A program made the position numbers and the translations under genes. Shown piece after piece: positions 46-41,114 of a DNA stretch of 64,000 nt. Below the pieces are notes generated by a model, which worked only from the letters and a program-made list of their open reading frames with translations, searched no databases and was not told the DNA's origin. How positions within the stretch are numbered: the stretch's first letter is position 1; each line of letters opens with the position of its first letter. Source of the stretch: Trichosphaerium sp. ATCC 40318 (Eukaryota; Protista; Tubulinea); contig JALMLS010000537.1 in the NCBI GenBank assembly GCA_038496445.1, positions 1 through 64,000 on the forward strand. Reading direction: 5' to 3'.

Positions 46-1035
46 TAGTTAACTTCTACATGCACCTGAACAACGCAATTCAGCGATACATGATGTGTCT
101 TTCCCAGACGTATGAGAGTGATTTTATGAGCTCCTTTAAGAGCAGCAATGCCCTCATTTGTAACATTAAGATATCCAAGTGTGATGGTATGCACACAGAT
201 AGAGCAGCTATACCTTTGTCTGTAAGATTTAAGGAAAGAATAAAAATTGTATGAACACCAGCCAAAGCACTTATTCCATCATCTGTTATCTCGTTGCTCC
301 TACACATCGCATACAAATAAATTGAATGAACGCCTGCAAGTGATTTAAGACCCTCATCTGTCACTGAGGTACCTCCAAGGTATATTGTATGAACACCTGA
401 TAGATGTTTCACACCTTTATCTGATTTGAGCACAGATAAAGACTTATTTTGTGTACGCCTGAGAATGATTCAAGATCTTCATCTCTTACCTTCGTATCGT
501 TTAAATTGATAGAATGAACGCCAGAAAGTACTCCAAAGTTTACGTCGTTGAGGGTTTTACATTTATTTAGAGTTATGGTGTGAACTCCTGCCAGTGCTTT
601 GAGACCCTCACGTGTAATTCCAGTACAACGACCAAGGTTTATTTTATGTACTCCAGCAAGCGCTTTTAGTGTAGAGTCATCAACGCAAAGCCACGCAAGA
701 TTTATTGTATGTACGCCAACCAAACTACTCAAACTTTTCTCATCAAGTGGTGTTTCTGAACGAGGAAGAGCTGATAGATCAAGATGCTTAACACCCTTCA
801 GGTTAACTAAATGCTCCTTTTCTCGTAATTTATAAAATATCATTGTATGTCTTAGAACGCCCTTGTATTGAGATATCATTGCAGATTGATACGGCTTTGT
901 TATAGTTGCTTGAAGGTAACCAACGTTTTGATGAATTATATCTGAGAAAAGATGATTTAGTTGTGATAACTTGTATCGAACGTCATCGTGAGAGGTTTGA
1001 GTAATAAGTGTTAATAATTCAATAGGAACGTCCAA
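46..1035 (-). pseudogene. Intronless F-box-like + leucine-rich repeat (xVTDEGLKALAGVHTINL-type) gene, frameshifted
   Basis: N-terminal LDVPIELLTLI (F-box-like) is followed by many GVHTI/GVHSI LRRs. The repeats continue across frame changes near ~425 (ORF 409-1035 to ORF 80-433) and ~198 (…ALS then VHTITLGYLNVTNEGIAALKGAHKITL in another frame). There is no in-frame ATG before the upstream stop at 1081-1083. Confidence 0.8.
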
Positions 1036-1400
1036 TATTCGTGTTGTTTTAGCGCTAAGGCGAAAGTAAGTCTTTGTACGTTAAATGGCTATTTTAACCA
1101 ACATGTTTAATGTGATAGTTGGTTGTCAATAACACCGAACGCACCTCTGTTCCATCAATTATGTTCGTTGTAAAATATGATAGTTATCTATTTGACCACG
1201 TGTTTATTAACCGACGTGTGTATTTAATGAATTTAGAAGCCACTAATTAACTGCGAGTCAACAACGTTCAATGTTTGTAGCAATCTCTCTAGAGTTTAAC
1301 TTTACCAACACATTTCAGCAAACACCTTAAGTCGCATCACACTAAACCCTCTAAACAACGTTTACGATCGTAACCACTTGCTCTACGCTAATAAAAAATC

Positions 1401-7792: not shown

Positions 7793-8586
7793 TTATAGTT
7801 TGTTCTTTAAGTACTTTAGTTTTCCATCTTCATACCAGCCTTTAATATCTCCATGTCTTTTACCATCAACCCACATGGACTGGTCTGAAGTTGTCCACTT
7901 TCATACCATCCTATACTTTCGCCAGTTTGTTTACCATTGACCCACATGGATTGGCCTTCAAGTTGTCCATTCTCATACAAATCTCTACGTTTGCCATGTT
8001 GTTTGTCATTGGCCCACATGAATAGATACTGTAATTGGCCATTCTTAAACCATCCTTTACTTTCACCAGTATGTTTACCATCAACCCATGAGGCTTGTCG
8101 CTCAAGTTGTCCATTGTTATGCCACTTTTTAAATTCACCATTTAGTTTACCATTAACCCACATGGCATGGTATAGTAGTTGTCCGTTGTCATACCATGCT
8201 TTATTTTCACCATGCTGTTTATCATTAACCCACATGGATTGGACCTGAAGTTGTCCACTTTCATACCATGACAACCACTCACCTTCTTTTTTACCATTGA
8301 CTTGTATGTACTGCTCCTTGAGTGATCCATTTGGATACCATTCTTTAATCAACCCATTTACTGTGTATTGATGAGACTTCACCTTTCCACTTTTATACCA
8401 TCTTATCCATATCCCTTTTCTTTGTAATACTTCATTAAAATGAGTATTTGTTGCAGCTCTCTTTGATAGAGTGTGGAATTTCGTGAATGTTTCAACGTTG
8501 AAAGTACAAATATAGGTTTGAAGTTCACATGGAATATCCAATAAAGTCAAAGCATGCAATTCATTGCACAATTTTCTTTTACACAA
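7793..8586 (-). pseudogene. F-box-like + MORN-variant (YwqK-type) repeat protein, intronless, 1-nt deletion near the 3' end
   Basis: LLDIPCELQTYI is followed by ~8 repeats of WYxNGQL-x-x-x-MWVNGK-x-GE. The last repeat continues in another frame (QSMWVDGKRHGDIKGWYEDGKLKYL, stop at 7793-7795). There is no in-frame ATG. Confidence 0.8.
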
Positions 8587-9966
8587 GGGACTAGAATACT
8601 ACGAAGAAAAAATGTTAGATAATAGTACAAAAATATTATCTTGTGTCAGTCAAGCTAGGCTGCTGGTTTGTTGGCCTTTACTGTTGTAAGAACTACAAAT
8701 AAGTAGTTTTGTACTGAGTAAAAAACTGGATTGACTGGTTCGCACTAGTTTCAAGAAATTTGGCACGTGACGCGTGATATGTCCTATTTCTAAGAAATCA
8801 CGTGTTTTTGCGCCGTTTTGTTCTTACAGCATAAATCAAATAAAAAAAAAACCCAACGGGTAGTTGTGCTTGTTATTAAAGCATAGCCTCAAAAACAAAG
8901 CTAAGGCGCAGTATGCGCATCGTACGTACCATGTGCATAGTGAATAAATACTACAAATCCTATTACAACGCGATCACTGCTTGCCGTGCCTTGGAGACTT
9001 GTTACGCCTTCCGAGAAATGTATTGCTGGTTGCTTACTAGGAACGACTTTTTTTTTTACCACGTCTGTAGAAAACTGCCAACTAGTGTCTTAGTACAAAG
9101 TGCAAACGTAAGTATCGTGAGTACTATGAAAGGCTACCACATGACGGTAAAGCCACCTAATTGTCACTACTTGCATTACAAATTGACAACAGTTGTTAAT
9201 CCTTAAAGTATCCAGCTGGCAATTCATAACAAATTCATTGTGCTGACTTGTATGTCCTGGAAGAAATGTAATATGTAAGACTTGACTGAATTCTAACACA
9301 TCGTAAAGGGTTTTATTTTGGACTAAAAATGAGAATAATAAACATTAGTGAGACGGAGATGTTAGCAAGAAGATTGAGCTCGCGTTGAAATCCTTTGACA
9401 AGAGCGCAGCTCCCGAGTCGCTAGAAGAATCCGAACATCTATGCAAAGAAAGGAGGCTCTTGACTACTATCGGTTCAATAGGTACTATACAAAGAGTAAT
9501 TGTGCTCATTGAGTACCTATAACATATCTAAACTTGGTCAAGTGAACAATCTGGACAGATACAAATACATTGAGTTGGTAGAGAGAGGGTGAAACGCACA
9601 TTCTGATTACATCACTGAGATCATGACGATGGATGATTACGAAGCATACGTATGAGAAAATCGTTACTACCCAATAGTGTAAAGAAGAGAATTTGAGACA
9701 AGAGCACGAAAGCATTGGACAGTTTTAAACCTATTCCGTATACGTTTAGAACAAATGTTGATAATCTCAGCTTGGGTTCTTGGGTACTACCAAGCATAGC
9801 ACAATTCTTAGAAGCTCCGAAGAGTAAAAGGAATATCGCAAGAGTGTATCAATCCTCCTTAAACAGGTAATACGAGCAAAAAGAAAGGGTTTAAAAAATA
9901 AACTCCATTGTGTACTTTAACTATGTTGTCTTTATTTGATTAAAAGCACAGTAAAGTTGTTAGTGA

Positions 9967-12844: not shown

Positions 12845-15800
12845 TTATGCAATCAGCATAGTTTTTATTATTGTTTGGATAACAGGATTATGACAACTAA
12901 TATCAAGGCTTTGATCTCGAATCTTATCTGATAAGAGCTTATTCATCTTTTTACGCAACTTGTTCATAAGCACAGCTAAAAAACTAGTTAAAAAAATTGT
13001 GTTTTTTCAAAAAGAAATTTGATTGGCGGGATGTGCACAAAACAATTAACAAAATAAATAGCTCAAGTAGGTTTGTTATATACATGTAAAAAAACTCCAA
13101 GGAACAAAAATTCCTGAGCACAAACATCACGTGATGTTGAATTGTAGGAAACATTTTTTGAACCAAAAAAAAGATTTTTTTGTTTCTGTCTTCGTACCCA
13201 TTTTCCCAGGTAACTGAAAACTCATCCACTTATCAACATATACAGTTGGTTTAGAGTCGTTCCCATTTATTCTCACATCAACATTTTTACCAAAGAGTAA
13301 TAATGGAAATGGAGAAATCATAGTAGTGCCATGAATGAAAACTTTCGATGTTTTTACTTTTTCTGTAAAAACAAACCAAGTTGTTGGGAAGTCCTTCAGG
13401 GAGAAATTGACAGAAGATGGATGAATAAATACACTCTCACGATTAGCTAGTTCATATCTCCATGCTCTCTTAACGTCTATAAAAAGAGAGCAGTTAGAGA
13501 AGAGTAAACCACAAAAAGATGCTTACTGTCCCTATTTCTGACTTTCGCTTGAGCAACATTTGGGTATAACCCAGCAACAAGAATAGCTTTAATGAGTTCA
13601 ATATTGTCACCATTCTCATTATCTCTTTCGTCACCTGATCCAAAACCTGCTTCTCTAACAAGGTTCCTACAATTTGATACGTTAAGAGTTGAGCTTATTG
13701 TTGCTTAGAATAAAATTCGTTTTTGTTGGTTCATAGACCGATGACAAGTGAGTTAACGTACTTGAACTCTCGCTTCAATTTAGTAATAGTGTCAAGTGTT
13801 GTTTTAGATAAGTAGTGATCTCTACAGAACCTTGATCGATCTTTTGCTCTTGTTTCCCTTTTGAACAAATGTCAGCAATCGCAAACAAAACAACACTGAC
13901 GACAATAACGCGGGGAGAATTCAAAAAGTTTAACCACTCACATGTACTCTTCATAGGCATGAAGGTTTGCTATCAAGTCAGAGTTTGATCCACCAGAGAT
14001 GTTTTTCTTCTCAGCGTTGGCTTGATCTCTGTAAAAAAGTTAATTATATTGAGAACCAAAAAAAAAAGAAAAGACACGTGTACCTTTCATCAAAATTACT
14101 AACAAAAGGTGTACGAAGTGTCAACGATGCACATATAGTCAATACAGAGTCTAAACATCCAAATATCGATGCGAATAACATCATCTTTCCCATTTGTGCT
14201 TCAACCTAAACCCGTCTTTAATTTTCAATCCAAACAAAACAAGAAAAAATCATGAATCTGGTTTGATTGTAGTACGGGTAGTTTAGCAAGATGTATGCCA
14301 AGTGGTGATAAATTTTCAGCTTCATCCATAGCGCCTATTCCTATTAAGGAATGTTTTGAATGTTGAATGGCAGAATCAGGAGGTTTTTCAAGTGCTCTCG
14401 ATAAAAAGTTGCTAAAAAAAAGCTGTTAGAGGTATCAACCTTTACCTTTTTATGAAATAACAGACTTTGAATAGTCCAAACAACACAGGCTATTGAATGA
14501 CAACAATAAAGTCGTGTTCAAGTAAAATAACTAAAAGAATAACTTACTCGATTCTTCCAAGTTTAAGCAGACGGATTTGCAAACACAGCTCATCCAATGG
14601 TACACGTTTGATCTCAGGTACTTCATATTCGGCCAAGCGACTCATTTGGATCTCTGTAACAAGATGGAAACAGAAACCAGGCTTGACACGACCTGCACGA
14701 CCACGACTATAAAAAAATAAGAAAAAGAACTCTGTTATGATCTATACCGTTGTCGTGCTGATGCTTGAGAGGCGTAAACCTCTTGAAGAGAAGCCAGTCT
14801 AGACTTTGAATCCCATGTCTTTTGTTTAGCTTTACATGTGTTGATAACAAAGACAACATCATCAATTGTTACAGATGTTTCTGCAATGTTTGTTGAAATG
14901 ACGATTTTTCGTACACCACGTGCTGGGCGCCTAAATATCTTGTTTTGGTCCTCTGAATATTACGCATTAGTATTGTTATAAAGTAAAAAAGAAACATACC
15001 TGTTGATAGCGAAGAATGGAGAGGATAAACATCAACTCTATTGGTTCGAAAGAAACTTTCATCTAAAATATCATGGTAGAGTTTTCTAATCTCCGCCATA
15101 CCAGGCATAAAGATGAGTATCTATAATGCAGTGAGTGAGCACATTAAAATTGTTCAATTTGTAACATACGGCTCCTTCTTCGTATTGAGAGCAGATGTGC
15201 TTCACAAGTTGAACAATGAGGTGGTTGTTAATAATTTTTGGATCAAGAGCCTCCAGAGCTCTTACAACGCTGCTAGAGTATTTCTGCTGATACATTTCTG
15301 CTTCCCTTTATTATAAATCAATTAATAAACAATAAGGATAAAGATGAGAAGAAAAACGTACTCTTGTTTTAGAGTTTTTGGCTTCTTTCGAAGAACAAAC
15401 TTGTTTGTAAGCTGTTTTGTGTTGTATTTTGTTTTAAATAGAATGTCTTCCAGAAAATATTCTTGAACAGGATGAGTAAACCCAGGAATCTCGATTTGTG
15501 GGCATTTGAAGTATGAAGCAAATAAATCAGCATTAACCTAAGAAATACGAAATAAATGAGATAATAAGAAAATATTAAGAAAGATATAAGGAGTTCATAC
15601 AGTGGCTGACATAAGAATAATCTTCAGGTCTTTTCTTTGCTTGATAAGTTCTTTCAATATAATCAACAAAAAATCACTACAGAGAACAATCAGAAGAGGT
15701 TCTGAGGTTTTTCATAGAAGGGTTGTTTTTTTTAGTACCAGTTTAAGTCACGCTCATGAACTTCATCTAGGATTACATGTGATACGCCATGTAGAAATCT

Positions 15801-18494
15801 ATCGTTCTGTAAACGGCGTAACATTACACCAGTTGTACAGAAGAGCACCTGTGTCTTCGCACTTCGCTTTGTTTCCAACCTGCAATAAAAATCAAAATCT
15901 ATTACACTCGATTTCTAATACCTTATACTATAACCCACTTGGTTACCAACCTTTTCTCCTCGTTCAGCGGCCACCCTCTCAGCCACAGCAATTGCAGACA
16001 GTCGCCTTGGTTGTGTACAAATGATATTACACTCAGAACCACGTCCTTCGTTTATGTACTTGTCAAGAATAACTTGACCAACCTGAGTAGTTTTACCGCA
16101 ACCAGTTGACCCTATATAAACGGTAAATAACATTCAAAGGTGTAAATAAATGGACAAAAACGAAATAAAGCGATGAAGCTTACCAGAGAGGAGAACAACT
16201 TGATTATTACTAACAATTTCGATGATTTCATCTTTCATTTTGTAAGTTGGTAGCTTTGTCCTAAGTAGTGACTTAATGCTTCTGTACGCTAAGAAAGTGG
16301 AAGGGTACCTGATACGTTGCATTGATTGATATTTTTTATTATTCTTCTGCTTATCTTGAAGGTCATCTAAAAGCCTTTCTGAATCTTCTTTTTGATGTTC
16401 TAGTTGTCTCTTTGTTTTGACACGTTCATAGTAAATTGGCTTCACTTCAGGTTCTGATACTACTACAGGCTTTGGTTTTGGCGTAACGAAAGCCTTCTAT
16501 GGGTAGTAAGAAATTAAAATAGTTGTGGTTGATTTGTCTTACCTTTTCGTTTTTGGCTTGCTCTTCTTGTAGTCGTGCTTGAGTTCTTTCAATAAAAAAG
16601 TTCTTTGATGCAGCTTTACCACCTCTATTACCAGATCCACGACCTCTATTAGAACCGCGACCTACACCACCTGTATTGTTACCACCACGGCCTCTACCTC
16701 TGTTATTTGATCCTCTTCCTTTTCCGCGTCCGCGTCCACCTCGTCCTCTATTGTTTCTACCTCTTCCTCTACCATTTCTTCTTCCTCTTCCTTTGTTGTT
16801 GTAGTTATCTTCTTGACCTTTAGTCAAGGCATTGGGCTCCAGAGACTTGACTTGATCAGGAACGTTGTCTTGTACCCAACTTATAATTTCAAACAACATT
16901 GGAGAACCAATTAAGTCAGCGGCTTCTTTGGCAATCTTTTTGTTAATAGCTCTGATAGTACTAGGCTCAAGTTCTCTAAGAAATATTAAATAACATAGTA
17001 TTGTTGGGGTATACATACTCGTTCACAAAAGCCATGAATGGGAGAACATTAGGGTAAGCACTTGTAGGTGGAATGTGAATTTCAAAAACACTTTTGTTTG
17101 GAATGTTGTCTAGTTTCATCTAGGGACACTAAGACCTTCATCTTTATGTTTATAAGTACCTCCATAGTTACTAGATTATCAGTACACGTAAGGCCTTCTT
17201 CAAAAATATCATTGAGACTCTCTATTTCCTCTTGTTTGTTCTCTTTCTGCTCCTTATTTTTTCTTTAGTAAATTGTTGCTGTTCTTTTTTTTTCTTACTT
17301 CCTCATCTACGGATCCCTCAATCTCTTCAACATCTGATGGGAAGAATGTTTCCATAACGGCATACATAGCTTTTTGCTTGTCTTTATCACACTCAAGTAG
17401 AATTTTTTCAACTTTAGGCTCTGGTACACCATATTTTGAGCTTAACCTAAAATGAACCAATAAGTTCTCTTTTCTCCTAAACACCATCCACTTACATGCG
17501 AACATAATTATTAAGTTCAAATCCCAAACCACCCTTGCTTTCTGGGAGAATAACTTCTACCTAATAAAAGACCTGATTAGATAATAAGTTGGGCATAAAG
17601 AAAACTTGCCTGCGTGGAAAGATTTGTGGACTTGAATTTCCTGGGTAACTCTGTCTCATCGAGGTTGAGGCATAACCACCCAATAGCTTCATTAACATCG
17701 CCATTATTATTGCTTAATCCAAGTATAGCCTAAATCATTCATAAGAATAAATCACGTGGGGTTAAACGCCGTACCTGTGTCTGAGTAAATCCCATACTTT
17801 TTATTCTGCCAATAGCTCTATTATCTTTTGAAGCATTGTAATTACTGTCGCCTTCTTCGCTAGTTTCATCATCGCTCTAATGTTATCCTATAAATACCGT
17901 TTCCCTTCCGTTAAGGGGTTAACCATACCAAGTTCTTTAACATATCTAAAAGCAAGAAAATGAGACAAGAAGAAAACAAGAAAAGATCAAAAAAAAATTA
18001 TGTAAATTACCCATAATCATATCTTCGTTTTTTGAAGAGAACGTAACATTCTCTGCGTTTGAAGGTCCTTTACGAAAAATATCTCGTCTCGCTGAAGGTT
18101 TTTTAGGTACTCTTGGGCCTTTTCTACCTTTTTGAGTATTGTTAGTTACAAATAAATTAAAAAGGGCTTTTCAGCAGTACCTTCAACGGCTACATCGCCG
18201 TAATCGTCCTAAAACGTATTTATGATAAAATTATAAGTTATTTGTTATTACTTGATGCTGTGAAGGATTCCATGGGCGTTGTTGTGAAGAAGCTTATACG
18301 TTTAGACACTTTAAGAATATTATACAGTACCTGCAGCCAATTTCGCTGCCTTCTTTTTTTCTACGGCTGTAAGCTATATATTTAATATTTCTAAGAGTAC
18401 TCGCGCTTCCTGGTGGATTTGTCTTTTTGTTTTGACGCTTGTTTGAGGCATTCTTCCTAAACTTCGCTTTCATGCGCTTTTTCTTTGGCGGCAT
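12845..18494 (-). CDS. DHX57: DEAH/RHA RNA helicase, DHX57-like (UBA/RWD-like N-terminus, RGG tract, helicase core, HA2, OB-fold)
   Basis: Motifs [70 protein letters not shown] and [10 protein letters not shown] across many exons. The RWD end [14 protein letters not shown] and an RGG-rich exon (16447-17016) are present. ATG at 18494, stop at 12845. Confidence 0.85.
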
Positions 18495-24602: not shown

Positions 24603-27600
24603 TTACATGTATACTATCACTACAGGAGCTTGTTCTTTTGGTTTGTTGAAGAACTGCATGCTAAAATCTTCTGTTTGTTGTGGAGTTCCATAGTATCGAT
24701 AAACACGAACGAATACTGCTACAGGCTCACGCAGTGGTTGAGTATGGAATAGTTTGAGTTGTACATCATAAGGCCCTGTAGGCGCGTTTCTGATCGTATA
24801 TTCTTGAGGACCATAACCTGTACAAAGGTTACACAACAACGATCTATTAAGTTTTTTTTCTTGTACCTTGCCGATCGTCTGACATAAGTCCGCCTGATCG
24901 TGTGTGGTTGTTAAAACTATAACATCTTTCACCTGAAGGCTCAATAACATGTAACTCTACATTGGCTAATGGATTATTCCACGTGATAACAACTCTTAAG
25001 TAACAATAAGTTAGTTTGATGTTTAATGTTTAAGAGTGTTCTTTTTATGAACATACCTCAAGTCGTATTGAAATGTTCTATTGCATATCGTATATAAAGA
25101 AGAGCTTATAGATTTCAGAAGATTTTCAGCCCTTATAATGCCCTCATGGTCATTACATGATGTCCTGAGTGAATGCATAATTCTGCACAAATCCTTTAAC
25201 GCAAATATCTCAATGTTGCCCTTAAAACGATCATCCCAGGTTGTTGTTAGCACTTTCCCAAGTAATTCTATACTCTCTAATATATCCTTGTCTTCGAAAG
25301 CAAGTGCAGCCTCCCTATAACATAGTAAGAAACCAAAAAAGAATATGGGAAAATAAGAAAAATATAGGAAAAAAAAAACCCTATAACGCTTCACGTACCA
25401 CAAGAGCTGAGGTTGCTCTCCACGAATTTTGATCATCTTTTTTAGTACTTGGCGTATCAAATCTTTAGATGCCGTTGCGTCTATGGTATACAGATACCAA
25501 ACAAAAAGACGATAATACTCAATGTTATCAATATCGTCTTCAATCTTTTTTGATATTAATAGTTTACCCAAACGTTTGTTGTTCTGTCCATAGTAAAATG
25601 CGTGATTGATGATTCTTTCTAAAGACACACCGTCTGCTTCAAACTCACTAATGTGGCATGGACTGTCTAATTTTCTTGTACGTTGAGATGATACTATGCC
25701 TTTCTTCTGCCTAAATTTAATAGAGTAAGAACTCGTTCAAATGCGACCTTGTTATCTTTGTTTTACCTTGAACCAACGCTAACTTGTCTCATCAATTCAT
25801 CTAATATAGAATAATCACATTCCTTGTCTTTTGATACATCATAATCCATGCTGTCCTCATCACTACTTGAAGAAGAAGAACTGCTTTCAGATAATAATTC
25901 GGAATCATCTGATTCATCTTCAGAGCTAGAATGCAGAACATATGATGTGTCTTTATCGTCATCTTCACGCTAAATAACATTAATAAAAGTGTTTACAACG
26001 TTTTAAACAAAAATTATACATAAGCACTCCTCCGTGAACGTCTAATTTCTCGAAGTGCAACAGAACCTGCAGTTGATAAGGAACTCCAATAATACAAAAG
26101 AATTTAATATGTACCAGGTCTAAATCTATGTGGTTTCCGTATTCCAGACTCCGATGTTGTAGTATTCGCGTCATCGCTTAAGATAATTTCACGTTCTGAC
26201 TGAGTGTTTTGTGGCTTGTATGCAGGTGCCTTAGATGTAGTCCATCCAGAAGTTTCTCTTCTAGATGATGGAATTGTCTTCACAGGTCCTTTGATTCCTT
26301 TACCCGCTCTGGGCGTCCACTGTAAATCTTCTTCATCACTTTCGCTTTCACTTTCATCACTTGAATCACTCAATATACGGCGGTGTCTCTTAGCAGGCTG
26401 TTTACCACCCAAACCTTTACCGCCTAAACCTTTTCCGCCTAATCCCTTACCGCCTAAACCTTTACCACCCAAACCTTTACCGCCTAATCCTTTACCGCCT
26501 AATCCTTTACCACCTAATCCTTTTCCTTTTTTTTCTTAGAACATTTTATAGTGTATCCAAATAAAGGTACCTCCAAGGCCACTGAAAGATCCATATTGGC
26601 CGATTTGTTTTTTTCTAGCTTTAGCAGGTTGAATTTCCTCTTCTTTCTGCTCTACAATCACTTTTAATCTGTCTAATGAGTCCAAATTTTTATCCCTTGC
26701 TCGTCGTTTTGCTTTTTTCCCTTTTACATTTTTAAGACGCTCTCTAGCTTCTGTTAACATTTCAGCCTCTTCATCGTCATCATCCATTGCATCCTAAAAA
26801 ATAATTAGAAAAAAACAGCTAGCTGATGAAGCTGTGAGAGTAGGGTCACAAGAAAGTATACTTTGAGGTACAGCTAAGATTTTGGATTTTTAATACCTCA
26901 GACTGTTGCATGTGGTCATTTACCGAGCTTGCTTGGTTTTTGGCGTTCTGAAAAAAAGCTCCTTTGTGGTAGTACTTCTGCAAAAACTTGACGCTACTTT
27001 TTTCTGATAGTTTTCTGACTTGTGCTCTTTCTTCTTGCAAACTTTGGTTCGTTAGGGCTGCTCTCTAAGCGTATTATGATAAGCTTGTTGAATAATAACA
27101 TAGTATTCATAGTAAGTACTTACTGTCATACTCCCTTCTGGATTTTTTACAACTACACAAAGAGCTCAGAATGAATGCACATGAATTTAAAAAAAAAACT
27201 TAAGAGTTTGATTTTTGTTTCTTGTAAGACTGTTTTTAGTCTGACCTCTGGTGGTATATAGTATTCATCGCAAAATGTATTGTTCTTGTTGCTTTGCAAA
27301 TTCAACGTACTTTTAAGTTTCCTTGTATTCTTATGTTGCTCTAGCTCATTGGAATCATCACTAACGCTTGGTGATGAGATTATAGAATCACTATCGTAAC
27401 CGCCCATCACACAAACATCCATAAAGTCGTCATCCGGCAACTCAAGCTTTGATGCTTCCTCTACTAGCTTTTCCATTTTTTCCAGATCATCAGGCATTAT
27501 ACTTATCTCTGGAGGCATTAGTGTACAGTCTGTTATGTCAATATCAATTGGTTCTTTCATATCTGATGAGAGTATTGGTGCAGGCTCATTCACAACACAT

Positions 27601-30600
27601 GTTGAATTATAACTTGTTATACTTTTTGTGCCTTCGCTTACAGCGTGTTTTGCAAGTTCTCCTGGAAGCACTATCCTTGTTGCGTCTTGTATATGTCTAG
27701 CTGATATAACAGATTTGTTGTGGTAGTTTGAAACATTTCTGGCTTCATTTGTGATGCGATTGAAAAGGTCATTAACAAAACCGTTCATCAAGTTTATCGC
27801 TTTGTTTGAAATTTCGCTGCCTGGATGAACTTGATGGAGTACTTTGTATATGCGCTTAGTAAAATCTATATCGCTGGTATTTTGGCCATTCGAAAAGGTA
27901 GTGATAGACATGTCATCAGTATCTGTAGGTTCTGGAAGAAGAAACTGTTCAGAATTTTTTGGAAATGTTGATTTGTTTCGTTTTCTACTTGGATATGTCT
28001 CTTGCGTTCTCTTACGTTTGTAGGATCTTGTATTACTTTGATATTGATTCTGATACATGTAATAAGTGTCGTTATAAGTGTCTTCGAAATCAGCAAACTG
28101 CAAAACCTACAAACTTGTAAGACTTCAAGTTTAGCGACTTATTGTTACAAGCAACTTTCTACTTACTTGTCTATTCTTTGATAAAGAGGACGTCTCATAG
28201 AACTTTAAGTGCATATTATATATATCTTGTATTGATAACCATCTTAAAGCTTTAATTGTCTCTGGAGTATCAGTTCTTTTAGACACAACTTCATAATACG
28301 AGGCTCTAAAAATACCAAGCAGTCAGATATGTAACGGCAATGTTGTCACGTACCTCATTTCAGGCATACTCTCAGGAGGAGGTATGCTGTACTTTAAATA
28401 ACTATCAAGGGATTCAAGAACAATCATTGACGTGTATGGTGTAACAAGAGAGTATCGTTTACCAACATCTTTTATACTTGTCTAAAAAACCGAATCAATC
28501 TAACTGGCACTACAAACAAATGCTACCTGAACATCATCGCCATCTCCTCGCATCTTCAGCTCGTCAATCTTCATCTTTGCCCACGTCTTAGAAAGAAGAT
28601 CACCATTATTACTTTCAACAGCGTCTGATAATCGTATCGTGGTTGTATGCATAATATTTCCTGGAGACCCATAATGAAGAATTATGTTTGAGTCCTTCTT
28701 AACAGAATTCATGTCAATCTTCGCAGCTATGTTGAACTGGCTTGCTGCTAATGGCGTTGCAGTTGAAGGAAGCACTATAAATGTTTAGATTAGATTTTAA
28801 CACGTCATAGAATGCTTTTACAAGTCACGTGCGTTCAGATATAAAGTTATCATCGCATTGAGCATACAAGAACGAAAGTGCTTGTACGGAACCAGTCATA
28901 TCTTTTATAATGTTCTCAATAATGCCAGACTTTTTTCGAATAAATTCAAAATCATGTCGTTTGTCTTTGTCACCTTCTTTTGGCATATCATAGAACTTTC
29001 CTCCACTCTTCTTTGCCCACATTTTTAATAGAGTTGTGTTTCTCTTTATTGAGTTGTTGAATACATAAACAGGCCTGGTGAATCGAGGCGGCAGGTGAAA
29101 ATCATCACCAAGTGTATTCAGCCCGTCAGTAACAAGTATAAATACACTGTATGGTGTATCCACATTAGACAATATAGGATCCAAACACGCTAGATTTGTA
29201 GCACCAATACGATGAAAAGAACCTCGGACGGACTAACAACGTAATTATGCAAACGTCAACAAAAAAAAAAAATTTCTTATTTTTTTCTGGAATATTACTC
29301 CAAGTGTTGGCGCAAAAATGTTGCACTGGTAATGGTAGGTACAAAGAGAAAAAGGAAGAAATATTGTAGCGTACATCAACGAGACTTGCGTGGTATTTGT
29401 AAGTCCGCTTTTCAGCGTCTATATCAAACGTATACAAGTCTAGACTACCTTCATAACCATAATTTGCTAAAACTCCTTCAATGATACCAGTGAACTGTTC
29501 AGTGACTGTAGCGCTTCCTGATACATCCCATAATACGCATACTTTACCTCTTTTCTTCTCTTTGTTCGTTCTATATTGCATAGAAGGTATAATATCTTGA
29601 TAGAATAAATGACATTGACTTGACTTCCTGGATCCACTGTTGATCACTGTGTTGCAACTTTTGTCAGGTTTTGTTTGTACGTATTTACTAGCAGTTACTT
29701 ACTTGATATTTGGCATACAGGAGAAGCACAAGAAAATAATCGAACTGTAATTGAAGAAATCGCATTGCTTTTTTGTTTTGAATAATCACAAACATAAGCA
29801 TCTCCTGTGTTTTGAAATTGAAGTAATCCTCCACCAGATACAGACATTTCAGGAGGTTTAAATATTGCACCGAATACCTTTGTTTTTATAAATACGTCGC
29901 TGGAATTCCCAGAGCGTAATGGTAAATGAAACTCAGCTTGGTTGTAATCTTTATTTTCTATTGCAAAAAAAAAAGGTCAGCAAAACGGGAGCTACAAGAA
30001 ATGAACAAAATGGCTTCCACGTGCCTTTTATAAATCTTAGGATTTGCCCTATGGTTACTCGTATCTTCCTTTGTGTACCACGCTTAAAATTATTCATACT
30101 TGTTTTAAACACGTTGCCAACAACATTTTGAACAATCGAGGCTTGTTTTTTTTGAAAGGATTGAGTTTCTTGCTCGAAAACTTTTCTGGCTTTCTCTTTA
30201 TCAACTACAACTGCTTCTACCATGACGTTGTTTATTTCTATGGCGTATTTGGAAACGAAAGCATCTATACAAAGAAGATTAAGCGCGAGAGTTCGTAGGG
30301 CGTTAAAACAATCTTTTAACGCATGGGAGCATCGTTGCAAAGAGTTTTAAGTCACGATTACGCGTTTTGGAGCATGTAAACTTTAAACCGTCTGTTACGC
30401 ACCTTCACCCAACGGAAACTCAAATTCAGCCTCTGTTACGTCATATTCTTCGTTATTCTCAAATATTATCTCCAGTTTGGTTTCTTAGGACAATTTGAAT
30501 ATTAATTTTGTACAAGCTAAGGCTCACCTGCAAGCGCATCATGTATGTCAATCTGTACATTAAATGAAACAGCAGGGATTGACTTTCTCGTTGCTTTATC

Positions 30601-30624
30601 TATGAGTGCTATTGACGCATCCAT
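24603..30624 (-). CDS. VIT - vWA - [histone/spliceosome mosaic insert] - TPR-like - DUF2135 protein (multi-exon)
   Basis: VIT: VQIDIHDALAETKLEIIFEN…EAEFEFPL…AFVSKYAIEINNVMVEAVVVDKEKARKVFEQE. vWA with MIDAS: VLWDVSGS, GATN, LVTDG. ITI-like C-terminus: WAKMKIDEL…GKRYSLVTPYTSMIVLE. TPR-like: RGEQPQLL…WDDRFKGNIEIFAL. DUF2135: LRVVITWNNPLANVELHVIEPSGERCY…GYGPQEYTIRNAPTGPYDV. Confidence 0.85.
26365..26526 (-). repeat. 15-bp coding tandem repeat (GGKGL)x7, histone H4 tail-like, ending GGKQPAKRHRRILSD
   Basis: GKGL(GGKGL)7GGKQPAKRHRRILSD versus H4 [21 protein letters not shown]. The repeat units differ only at synonymous positions. Confidence 0.9.
27603..27863 (-). other. Histone H2B-fold module embedded in the VIT gene
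   Basis: IYKVLHQVHPGSEISNKAINLMNGFVNDLFNRITNEA…IQDATRIVLPGELAKHAVSEGTK is about 55% identical to canonical H2B by hand alignment to the remembered sequence. It is in frame with the upstream VIT-gene exon (…KNRQ|VLQFAD). Confidence 0.9.
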
Positions 30625-30673: not shown

Positions 30674-31642
30674 ATGAATGAACGTCAGAACAGCCTTGAC
30701 TTAACGCAACTACTTAAGTCTTCAGTGTCTTGTCGTTTGACAAATATTGACAACGTGATTAGTGCCGTCACTATGGGTAAGACTAATACCAAACTTCAAA
30801 TATCCACTACACAAGTTCAAAACTCACCTTCAGTGATAGCAAATCATTCAAGTAAGGCTAGTTCGAAACTAGCCGAGAATCAAACTTGTCTACTACAAGA
30901 GCTTCCACCAGAGACATTAACAGAAATTCTAAGCTACTCGTCCAAAAGAGAGCGTACTAGACAGTCTACAGTCTCTCACCTATTCAATAACATCATTCGC
31001 CACAATATCGGTTTGGGTCACCTTTACCTGAATAAACGTGGTCGCAATACAAACTTTGAACCAATCAAAGGAAGTCCTTTACTGAAGAACACTAAGATTT
31101 ACTGTAGTGGTTTAAATCTATCTGGAGATGAGTTATCTTGTCTATATGGTGTTCATACTATAGATTTACAATCTGCAACAATAACAGATGGAGGTGTCAT
31201 TGCGTTAGTTCAAGGAGGAAAACATAAAATTCATACTATTAATTTACAAGAAACAGATATTACAGATTTTTCTTTAAGGGCACTGAAGGGAGTACATACA
31301 ATCAATGTCAAGTTTTGCTACTATATTACAGAAGAAGGATTAGAGGCTTTGAGAGACACATATGAAATTTCAATCAGTCATCCTAAAGATAAGTGGCTTA
31401 AACATCTTGCCGATGTACATAGTGTTCATATTTATGATGGTCTTAAAATTACAGATCATGGAATCAAATTATTGGTAAATGTTAAGCGTTTACACCTATC
31501 TGAATGCAACACAATAACCGCCTCAGGATTGAAGGAATTGGTGAATCTAGAATATCTTTACATTGAGCGATGTGATTTAATAACGAAGTCCTGTTTGGAA
31601 GATATGAAATTTCTCAAATGGGTTAAAGTCAAAGGGAGATAG
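30674..31642 (+). CDS. Intronless F-box-like + LRR protein (intact member of the GVHTINL family)
   Basis: 322-aa ORF with LLQELPPETLTEILSY followed by GVHTIDL/IHTINL/GVHTINV repeats. The start may be the ATG at 30773. Confidence 0.8.
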   Translation: MNERQNSLDLTQLLKSSVSCRLTNIDNVISAVTMGKTNTKLQISTTQVQNSPSVIANHSSKASSKLAENQTCLLQELPPETLTEILSYSSKRERTRQSTVSHLFNNIIRHNIGLGHLYLNKRGRNTNFEPIKGSPLLKNTKIYCSGLNLSGDELSCLYGVHTIDLQSATITDGGVIALVQGGKHKIHTINLQETDITDFSLRALKGVHTINVKFCYYITEEGLEALRDTYEISISHPKDKWLKHLADVHSVHIYDGLKITDHGIKLLVNVKRLHLSECNTITASGLKELVNLEYLYIERCDLITKSCLEDMKFLKWVKVKGR

Positions 31643-41031: not shown

Positions 41032-41114
41032 GCATGGATGGCCGAGTGGTTAAGGCGATAGACTCAAGTTCTATTGGATGTATGTCCGCGTGGGTTCAAG
41101 TCCCACTTCATGCA
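41032..41114 (+). tRNA. tRNA-Leu(CAA)
   Basis: Acceptor GCATGGA/TTCATGC, D-arm GGCCGAGTGGTTAAGGC, anticodon stem ATAGA-CTCAAGT-TCTAT, long variable arm and T-loop GGTTCAAGTCC. A TTTT terminator follows. Confidence 0.93.

Follow-up and report, generated by a model that had tools for sequence, protein, structure and literature searches.

Known histone mimics and the locus compared

Proteins that copy parts of histones have been described both in viruses and in cells. In viral histone mimics and acidic-patch binders, short linear peptides imitate histone tails or, as the basic patch of H4 does, engage chromatin factors (PMC6972770, PMC9040877). EZHIP is a cellular histone mimic with tandem repeats (PMC12713659). 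The intracellular VIT/vWFA proteins are widespread in protists and have a heterogeneous C-terminal region, and one of them, Vwa1 of Dictyostelium, has the F-box protein FbxwD as its partner (PMC10539598). Here, we analyzed a locus that can be compared with these systems. It lies in a stretch of 64,000 nucleotides (hereafter the window) of the tubulinean protist Trichosphaerium sp. ATCC 40318 (GenBank assembly GCA_038496445.1, contig JALMLS010000537.1, positions 1 to 64,000). Six consecutive exons of the minus strand (25767-28106, ~640 codons) make up a mosaic of H2B, MFAP1, CDC5L, H4 and H3 pieces, in which a GGKGL motif of the H4 tail has been amplified in tandem (Table 1). We estimate at roughly 45% the probability that these exons encode part of a chimeric cellular protein, in which a block of copied nuclear-protein pieces inside a VIT/vWA-type gene makes up a histone-tail-like module and the (GGKGL)x7 array is translated and selectively maintained inside an internal exon.

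Like EZHIP, the mosaic is cellular, lineage-restricted and largely disordered; both combine tandem repeats with a short stretch copied from a histone tail and with a putative nuclear localisation signal. EZHIP differs in mimicking one H3 site with an inhibitory residue (PMC12713659). The mosaic has instead an H2B fold, an amplified H4 tail, H3 residues ~33-53, two spliceosomal fragments, and a VIT/vWA-type carrier. With the viral peptides it shares the copying of short tail segments, but those are virus-encoded whereas this locus is cellular and no viral relative of it was found. In plants, Helitrons and Pack-MULEs produce chimeras by capturing gene fragments. As in these chimeras, exon-sized pieces of unrelated genes are found here in one orientation, joined by introns into one frame; the mosaic differs in having no element termini, inverted repeats or target duplications, and in being flanked by ordinary, short introns. 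The carrier gene is best compared with the intracellular VIT/vWFA proteins (Dictyostelium Vwa1, human VWA5A), which also have an N-terminal VIT domain, no signal peptide, and a heterogeneous C-terminal half, and for which an F-box protein is a partner where here an F-box/LRR gene is the immediate neighbour (PMC10539598). The members described have no histone- or spliceosome-like inserts, and the C-terminal domain here is DUF2135 (PMC10539598). In the literature that we found, short-motif histone mimicry is already known, but an amplified H4 unit and a three-histone chimera in a VIT/vWA-type gene appear to be unreported. The searches returned no report of an amplified H4-tail motif or of a histone/vWA fusion, none of a single polypeptide combining pieces of H2B, H4 and H3 or of a VIT/vWA protein with histone-like inserts, and no paper on DUF2135.

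Table 1. Features of the mosaic and of its putative carrier gene, in the order of the minus strand (positions of the window).
Feature	Position	Strand	Evidence
Upstream carrier exons: ATG at 30622-30624, VIT domain, presumed vWA region	28167..30624	-	Pfam, frame analysis
H2B exon, with a divergent but complete H2B domain	27246..28106	-	Pfam, PDB, AF2, Foldseek
MFAP1-motif exon, Pfam profile positions 135-178 of 215	26897..27064	-	PF06991, E 2.9e-10; 5o9z_K residues 328-354, E 0.003
CDC5L/Cef1-like exon, segment just after the Myb repeats (chain residues ~141-192)	26571..26793	-	PDB search, E 1.1e-7
Intron of 36 nt after the CDC5L-like exon	26535-26570	-	Phase arithmetic
Internal GGKGL exon, 420 nt, no in-frame ATG, predicted disordered	26115..26534	-	Translation, secondary-structure prediction, phase arithmetic
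Tandem array of 15-nt units	26395..26529	-	7 full GGKGL units (26410-26514) and 1 partial unit at each end
H4-like stretch, aligned to histone H4 residues 1-30	26362..26454	-	PDB sequence search, E 0.009-0.05
H3-like segment, part 1 (~H3 residues 33-44)	26115..26148	-	PDB alignment, H3 comparison, shuffles
Intron of 48 nt, GT-AG, phase 1, splitting the H3-like segment	26067..26114	-	Phase arithmetic; H3 collinearity restored across it
Short exon, H3 alpha-N-like (9/10 residues as in H3 P0058), then Arg/Ser	26020..26066	-	Alignment, shuffles, phase arithmetic
Acidic Ser-rich exon: 33% Asp+Glu, 31% Ser+Thr, net charge -17	25767..25969	-	Composition; in-frame splice to downstream exons
Downstream carrier exons: helical region, DUF2135 domain, stop at 24603-24605	24603..25710	-	Pfam, frame analysis

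Selection on the GGKGL array

A first-pass annotation of the window, made from the letters and their open reading frames (ORFs), had reported the peptide GKGL(GGKGL)7GGKQPAKRHRRILSD. We obtained the same peptide by translating 26025-26538 on the minus strand, where it is part of an open stretch of 143 codons (26107-26535). Tandem Repeats Finder described the array by a period of 15 nt, 8.2 copies, and 87% matches. All seven full units encode an identical peptide. At the DNA level they vary in five columns, every one of them a third codon position, and none of the ten first or second positions is variable. As 84 of the 315 possible single-base changes in the units are synonymous, the probability that at least five independent events would all be synonymous is p <= 0.0013. 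Only in minus frame 0 do all units encode the same peptide; stops or mixed peptides appear in the five others. The amplification of GGKGL is under selection at the level of the peptide, in agreement with what the annotation had proposed from the synonymous differences between units.

The exon that contains the array must be internal, since it has no ATG of its own. It encodes, in this order, the H4-like tail, an acidic Ser/Glu tract, an unassigned basic linker, and the first half of the H3-like segment, and no secondary structure was predicted for any part of it. On the complement of the array (26204-26539, plus strand) there is an open frame of 111 codons that is proline-rich, with PPKPL-like units. 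We rejected this antisense ORF as a gene: its units differ non-synonymously, hence it is a by-product of the repeat.

Segments of H4 and H3 tails

To which histones the exon is related was assessed by alignment to the sequences of the PDB. Residues 28-58 of the GGKGL exon align to residues 1-30 of histone H4. The amplification of an H4-tail unit claimed by the first-pass annotation holds. Directly after the array comes an H4-like basic patch (26365-26394), the equivalent of H4 residues 15-24. The stretch combines the basic patch of an H4 tail with its Gly/Lys motif, of which one unit has been amplified; the K20 position is occupied by Arg, and the match is borderline. Further along the exon, residues 104-142 align to H3 residues 6-45 (E 0.013-0.03). 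When compared with P0058, an H3 sequence returned by the search, the end of the exon matches residues 161-171 and the exon after it residues 171-180; of the 20 residues, 16 are identical. Hence, the match to H3 is collinear across the 48-nt intron, as had been claimed. Scores as high as those of the two partial H3 matches were reached in 0 of 2000 shuffles. The alpha-N piece alone was too short to register in the PDB search.

The alignments also place Arg at the positions of H4K20 and H3K36, which the earlier annotation had noticed, and Phe at the position of the H3 Tyr that is five residues after K36. We take these position names (H4K20, H3K36, H3 Y41, and the lysine of the H2B alpha-C helix discussed below) to be those of the standard numbering.

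Neither segment is followed by a histone fold. After the H4-like tail there is an acidic tract and a linker in place of the fold, with no Pfam histone match, no PDB match beyond residue 58, and no predicted secondary structure. After the H3 alpha-N-like piece, the next exon is acidic and Ser-rich, with no match in Pfam or PDB. The H4 and H3 segments are therefore tail copies and not histone genes. For the same reason we discarded CenH3, in which a long tail precedes the H3 alpha-N: no histone fold follows. The middle part of the GGKGL exon found no credible donor in the PDB. By these alignments, the GGKGL exon and the next one hold copies of histone tail segments in a non-histone protein.

An H2B-derived domain

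The first exon of the mosaic starts with an acidic stretch, followed by a basic motif of the H2B type that precedes alpha1, an insert of ~45 residues, the fold with its alpha-C helix (27597-27866), and an acidic extension. The fold matches the Pfam histone family (PF00125, E 1.4e-9) and the H2B chains of the PDB, with E about 1e-28 (6e-30 for the best single chain). In a model by AlphaFold 2 (AF2), the predicted local distance difference test (pLDDT) is about 80-95 over most of the fold and lower in alpha-C, with helices at residues 82-93, 101-128, 136-146, and 149-171. Foldseek superposed the model on H2B chains with a template modelling (TM) score of 0.9 and a root-mean-square deviation of 1.2-1.3 A. 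The basic motif is that of ordinary H2Bs, from which the exon departs by the residues inserted between this motif and alpha1. Among 58 near-invariant columns of H2B, 38 are kept, including the stretch that forms the acidic patch, and 20 are changed, including a conserved Lys of alpha-C that is replaced by Ser. By sequence and by model, 27597-27866 is an H2B-derived domain and not a canonical H2B.

A word search with this exon returned only ordinary H2B folds (up to about 63% identity), none of them with its extensions, and a PDB search with the C-terminal extension gave no credible donor. H2B variants with long extensions are known, and the complete fold and alpha-C of the mosaic are similar to theirs. 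The difference is that this H2B is not a small free-standing histone, that it has the insert and the changed columns, and that its extensions are found in no database H2B. Within the otherwise disordered acidic extension, a short helix is predicted at 27468-27512 (minus strand, residues 205-219 of the exon), where 10-residue blocks of the AF2 model have pLDDT of about 81-90; it has no match to any known family. Across the three histone-like parts, three well-known modifiable lysines are replaced (by Ser in the H2B alpha-C, by Arg at H4K20 and H3K36) and the lysine of the H4 Lys-8 type is multiplied.

A mosaic in frame between VIT and DUF2135 exons

Two further pieces of the mosaic come from other nuclear proteins. 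One exon matches human, yeast, and other CDC5L/Cef1 chains, and another carries a conserved motif of MFAP1. In both cases only partial segments are present, there being no full-length MFAP1 domain and no CDC5L Myb repeats in the mosaic exons. As they are partial and their neighbouring exons come from other proteins, these pieces are fragments and not the organism's own MFAP1 and CDC5L genes. The acidic Ser-rich exon at the end of the mosaic had no credible donor in Pfam or PDB. Charge analysis revealed that basic copied pieces alternate with acidic Ser-rich tracts along the mosaic.

The upstream carrier exons start with an ATG that leads straight into VIT-like sequence, the VIT domain (PF08487, E 4.5e-11) being at the extreme N-terminus, where no signal peptide was found. 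Motifs similar to DxSxS and TDG, spotted by eye in the pieces 29168-29698 and 28828-29232, are candidates for the metal site of a vWA domain. Splice compatibility was judged by phase arithmetic on the coordinates, and each exon was searched singly. One frame is kept over ten consecutive GT-AG introns (36-181 nt), beginning with the exon that ends at 28167, crossing the six exons of the mosaic and those of DUF2135, and closing with the stop at 24603-24605; none of the seven junctions in and around the mosaic shifts it. If the mosaic is removed as a single intron of 2456 nt, the DUF2135 half is out of frame, so that skipping the mosaic breaks the frame of the carrier. The first and the last of the seven junctions (J1 and J7) have good GT-AG sites and the introns flanking the mosaic have only 56-60 nt. 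An intron of 36 nt, as long as that preceding the GGKGL exon, can also be placed in the VIT/vWA part; a 23-nt intron at about 28485 was rejected there, being out of frame. By phase arithmetic, the mosaic would thus lie in frame between the VIT(-vWA) and DUF2135 exons of one cellular gene. Lying inside a six-exon mosaic, the GGKGL exon is no free-standing tail mimic. The introns of the carrier gene (24603-30624, minus strand) are very short (36-103 nt, with one of 181 nt) and intergenic spacers are tiny, which suggests a compact protist genome.

These observations bear on whether the mosaic is translated at all. One might suppose that it is a relic, i.e., that the VIT...DUF2135 locus took up gene fragments in a long intron or a spacer and that these were never translated, their frames and splice-like sites being residual or accidental. 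Partial copies of five unrelated genes look indeed like the outcome of fragment capture mediated by transposons or by repair, and the H2B domain that has lost 20 of its 58 near-invariant residues, together with the lack of relatives in the collections searched, is in line with such a history. But a relic would hardly show synonymous variation only in its array, nor open frames of 317 and 143 codons in DNA of 36% G+C, where the other frames of the GGKGL region are full of stops. Codon usage is also specific to the frame: a test trained on the Pfam-supported exons of the window favoured the proposed frame in all mosaic exons long enough to be used and gave negative scores to antisense, intron, and intergenic controls. 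The seven junctions in frame, the carrier frame that breaks when the block is skipped, and the shortness of the flanking introns point in the same direction. Neither inverted nor direct terminal repeats nor other element ends were found around the mosaic, which also led us to reject a recent insertion of a transposon. We consider the relic an unlikely explanation.

Translation could also take place from another unit. In this alternative, a VIT(-vWA) gene and a DUF2135 gene would flank the mosaic, which in whole or in part would be transcribed as a unit of its own. It could encode a variant of H2B whose C-terminal tail is long and chimeric, or a shorter protein translated from the ATG in the CDC5L-like exon; the histone-mimic interpretation would then stand without its VIT/vWA carrier. 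In-frame ATGs are present at residue 16 of the open stretch of the H2B exon, within the CDC5L-like exon (ORF 26536-26787), and within the acidic exon, and spacers in the window go down to about 50 nt, hence there is room for separate units. Read-through of the J1 donor reaches a stop after 11 codons, and neighbouring start codons can be as close as about 50 nt here, short spacers being normal. Yet J1 and J7 join in frame at good sites, and the conserved part of the DUF2135 half starts before its first Met. DUF2135 is probably also a usual companion of VIT/vWA within one protein. As for the upstream half, a published search for VIT-like sequences found none without a vWFA region (PMC10539598). 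We regard separate genes as doubtful, to the same degree as the relic.

Searches for relatives and points against the chimeric protein

The GGKGL exon had no match in a word search, and an exhaustive HMMER search against 1.84 billion representative proteins found no relative. The 49 HMMER matches obtained were rejected as relatives because they are confined to the Gly/Lys repeat and belong to unrelated low-complexity proteins. Scans of metagenome and viral contigs with this exon, and of metagenomes with the DUF2135 exon, returned nothing. The protein collections searched lack the window's own proteins, and an exact look-up of the F-box ORF gave no record. For a disordered region in an unsampled lineage, missing relatives are weak evidence either way.

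Several points weigh against a single chimeric protein with a histone-tail-like module. Neither the GGKGL exon nor the extensions of the H2B exon has a relative in any collection searched. The H4 and H3 matches are each borderline when taken alone (E about 0.01), and the loss of a third of the near-invariant H2B columns (20/58) possibly reflects relaxed constraint. In the split upstream exons, the vWA region has no Pfam or NCBIfam match. The splice sites were chosen by eye and not by a gene predictor, and J2, of 181 nt and with a weak donor, is the least certain junction. The in-frame ATGs and short spacers described above count on the same side.

How the module might have arisen and act

If the mosaic is part of a chimeric protein, exon shuffling or the capture of gene fragments would have built it from five or more conserved proteins of the nucleus. 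H2B would have given the basic tail motif, the full fold, and alpha-C, H4 the region from the N-tail through the basic patch, and H3 residues ~33-53; MFAP1 and CDC5L would be further sources. Splicing would place the block, in frame, after the VIT(-vWA) half and before the DUF2135 half of an intracellular protein of the VIT/vWA type. Such a capture, if it occurred, would be old and fully domesticated. The expressed block would act as a multivalent module, mostly disordered and similar to histones. Its H2B fold could pair with H2A, and the repeated H4 Lys-8-type units, the basic patch, and the H3 segment could present many copies of the surfaces recognized by proteins that bind histone tails. 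Candidate binders are import receptors, chaperones, acetylation enzymes and their readers, and the acidic patch of the nucleosome. In this way the module might carry or tether the VIT/vWA protein to the histone-handling machinery or to chromatin, where it could compete with the tails of real histones. A multivalent substrate or sponge for tail-binding enzymes, as the first-pass annotation had proposed, is possible, and a role in targeting or tethering would fit the same data equally well.

A protein expressed as modelled would bring three histones' worth of recognition surfaces onto one natural polypeptide: an H2B fold, eight or nine H4 units of the Lys-8 type with the basic patch, and an H3 segment around K36, each with its best-known modifiable lysine replaced. 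It would thus be a natural probe for the features of tails that matter to readers, writers, and import factors, and a clear case of exon shuffling making a histone mimic in a cellular genome. It would also widen the possible connections of the intracellular VIT/vWA proteins, whose functions are poorly known. Even without expression, the mosaic would neatly document the capture of fragments from multiple genes.

Genomic context and neighbouring genes

The window has 36% G+C, few long ORFs, and genes with short introns throughout. Its exons carry Pfam domains of VIT, DUF2135, F-box/LRR, MORN, RWD, helicase OB-fold, filamin, armadillo, and 5-FTHF cyclo-ligase. The only RNA family match is a tRNA-Leu (anticodon CAA; 41032-41114, plus strand). 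Given these cellular domains, the short spliceosomal introns, and the tRNA, the window is ordinary nuclear DNA of a eukaryote, cellular and intron-rich, and not viral. The first-pass annotation had been written in terms of a host, infected cells, and isolates, which assumes a virus. On this view, the exon would be a virus-encoded multivalent sponge or decoy substrate for the histone acetyltransferases, deacetylases, bromodomains, and tail-clipping proteases of a host, with the host methylation sites removed. Its tail-like peptides do exist, as do the replacements of Lys by Arg at H4K20 and H3K36, and viral proteins are known to mimic histones (PMC6972770, PMC9040877). But nothing in the window is viral, no relative was found in viral contigs, and the exon has no start codon and has cellular-type exons in frame on either side. 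A virus-encoded sponge is very improbable, its viral part being contradicted by these data. Hence, the sequence anatomy described by the annotation was right, its viral setting was not, and the surrounding mosaic with its H2B, MFAP1, and CDC5L pieces had been missed.

Head-to-head with the VIT gene, and with a start codon about 50 nt away from its own, is an F-box/LRR gene (30674-31642, plus strand; F-box E 1e-4, LRR_6 E 2e-7). The closest match of its protein is an MMETSP transcript, at 50% identity, which is no more than a hint at a marine protist. By parallel with Dictyostelium, the pairing of the two genes may be functional. The pairing is also relevant to a more speculative scenario, in which the VIT/vWA...DUF2135 protein bears copies of conserved nuclear targets as baits, whose attack by enzymes of a pathogen it reports or absorbs; it would sense or soak up parasite or virus enzymes that attack the chromatin and the spliceosome. 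The pieces do come from five unrelated and extremely conserved nuclear proteins, and the neighbouring F-box/LRR gene recalls the F-box partner of the VIT/vWFA protein in Dictyostelium (PMC10539598). On the other hand, that all the pieces are conserved may reflect a detection bias, as only such pieces are recognisable against distant comparators. VIT/vWA proteins as sensors are unsupported, and PADLOC gave no match to known defence families. We see this scenario as a long shot by analogy; if true, it would mean that the integrated-decoy logic of plant immune receptors arose independently in a unicellular eukaryote. More generally, scans with NCBIfam and PADLOC revealed nothing beyond VIT and no known defence family.

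Other genes of the window are less directly related to the chimeric protein. A second leucine-rich-repeat gene (83-1080, minus strand) has the same type of repeat as the F-box/LRR gene at 30674, and the two suggest a lineage-specific family. MORN_2 repeats fill a single open stretch of 260 codons (7819-8598, minus strand; Pfam E 9e-28). Finally, the exons of a DEAH-type helicase-like gene (13130-17022, minus strand) encode an RWD domain, a long Arg/Gly-rich tract (16450-17022), and a helicase-associated OB fold (13130-13522).

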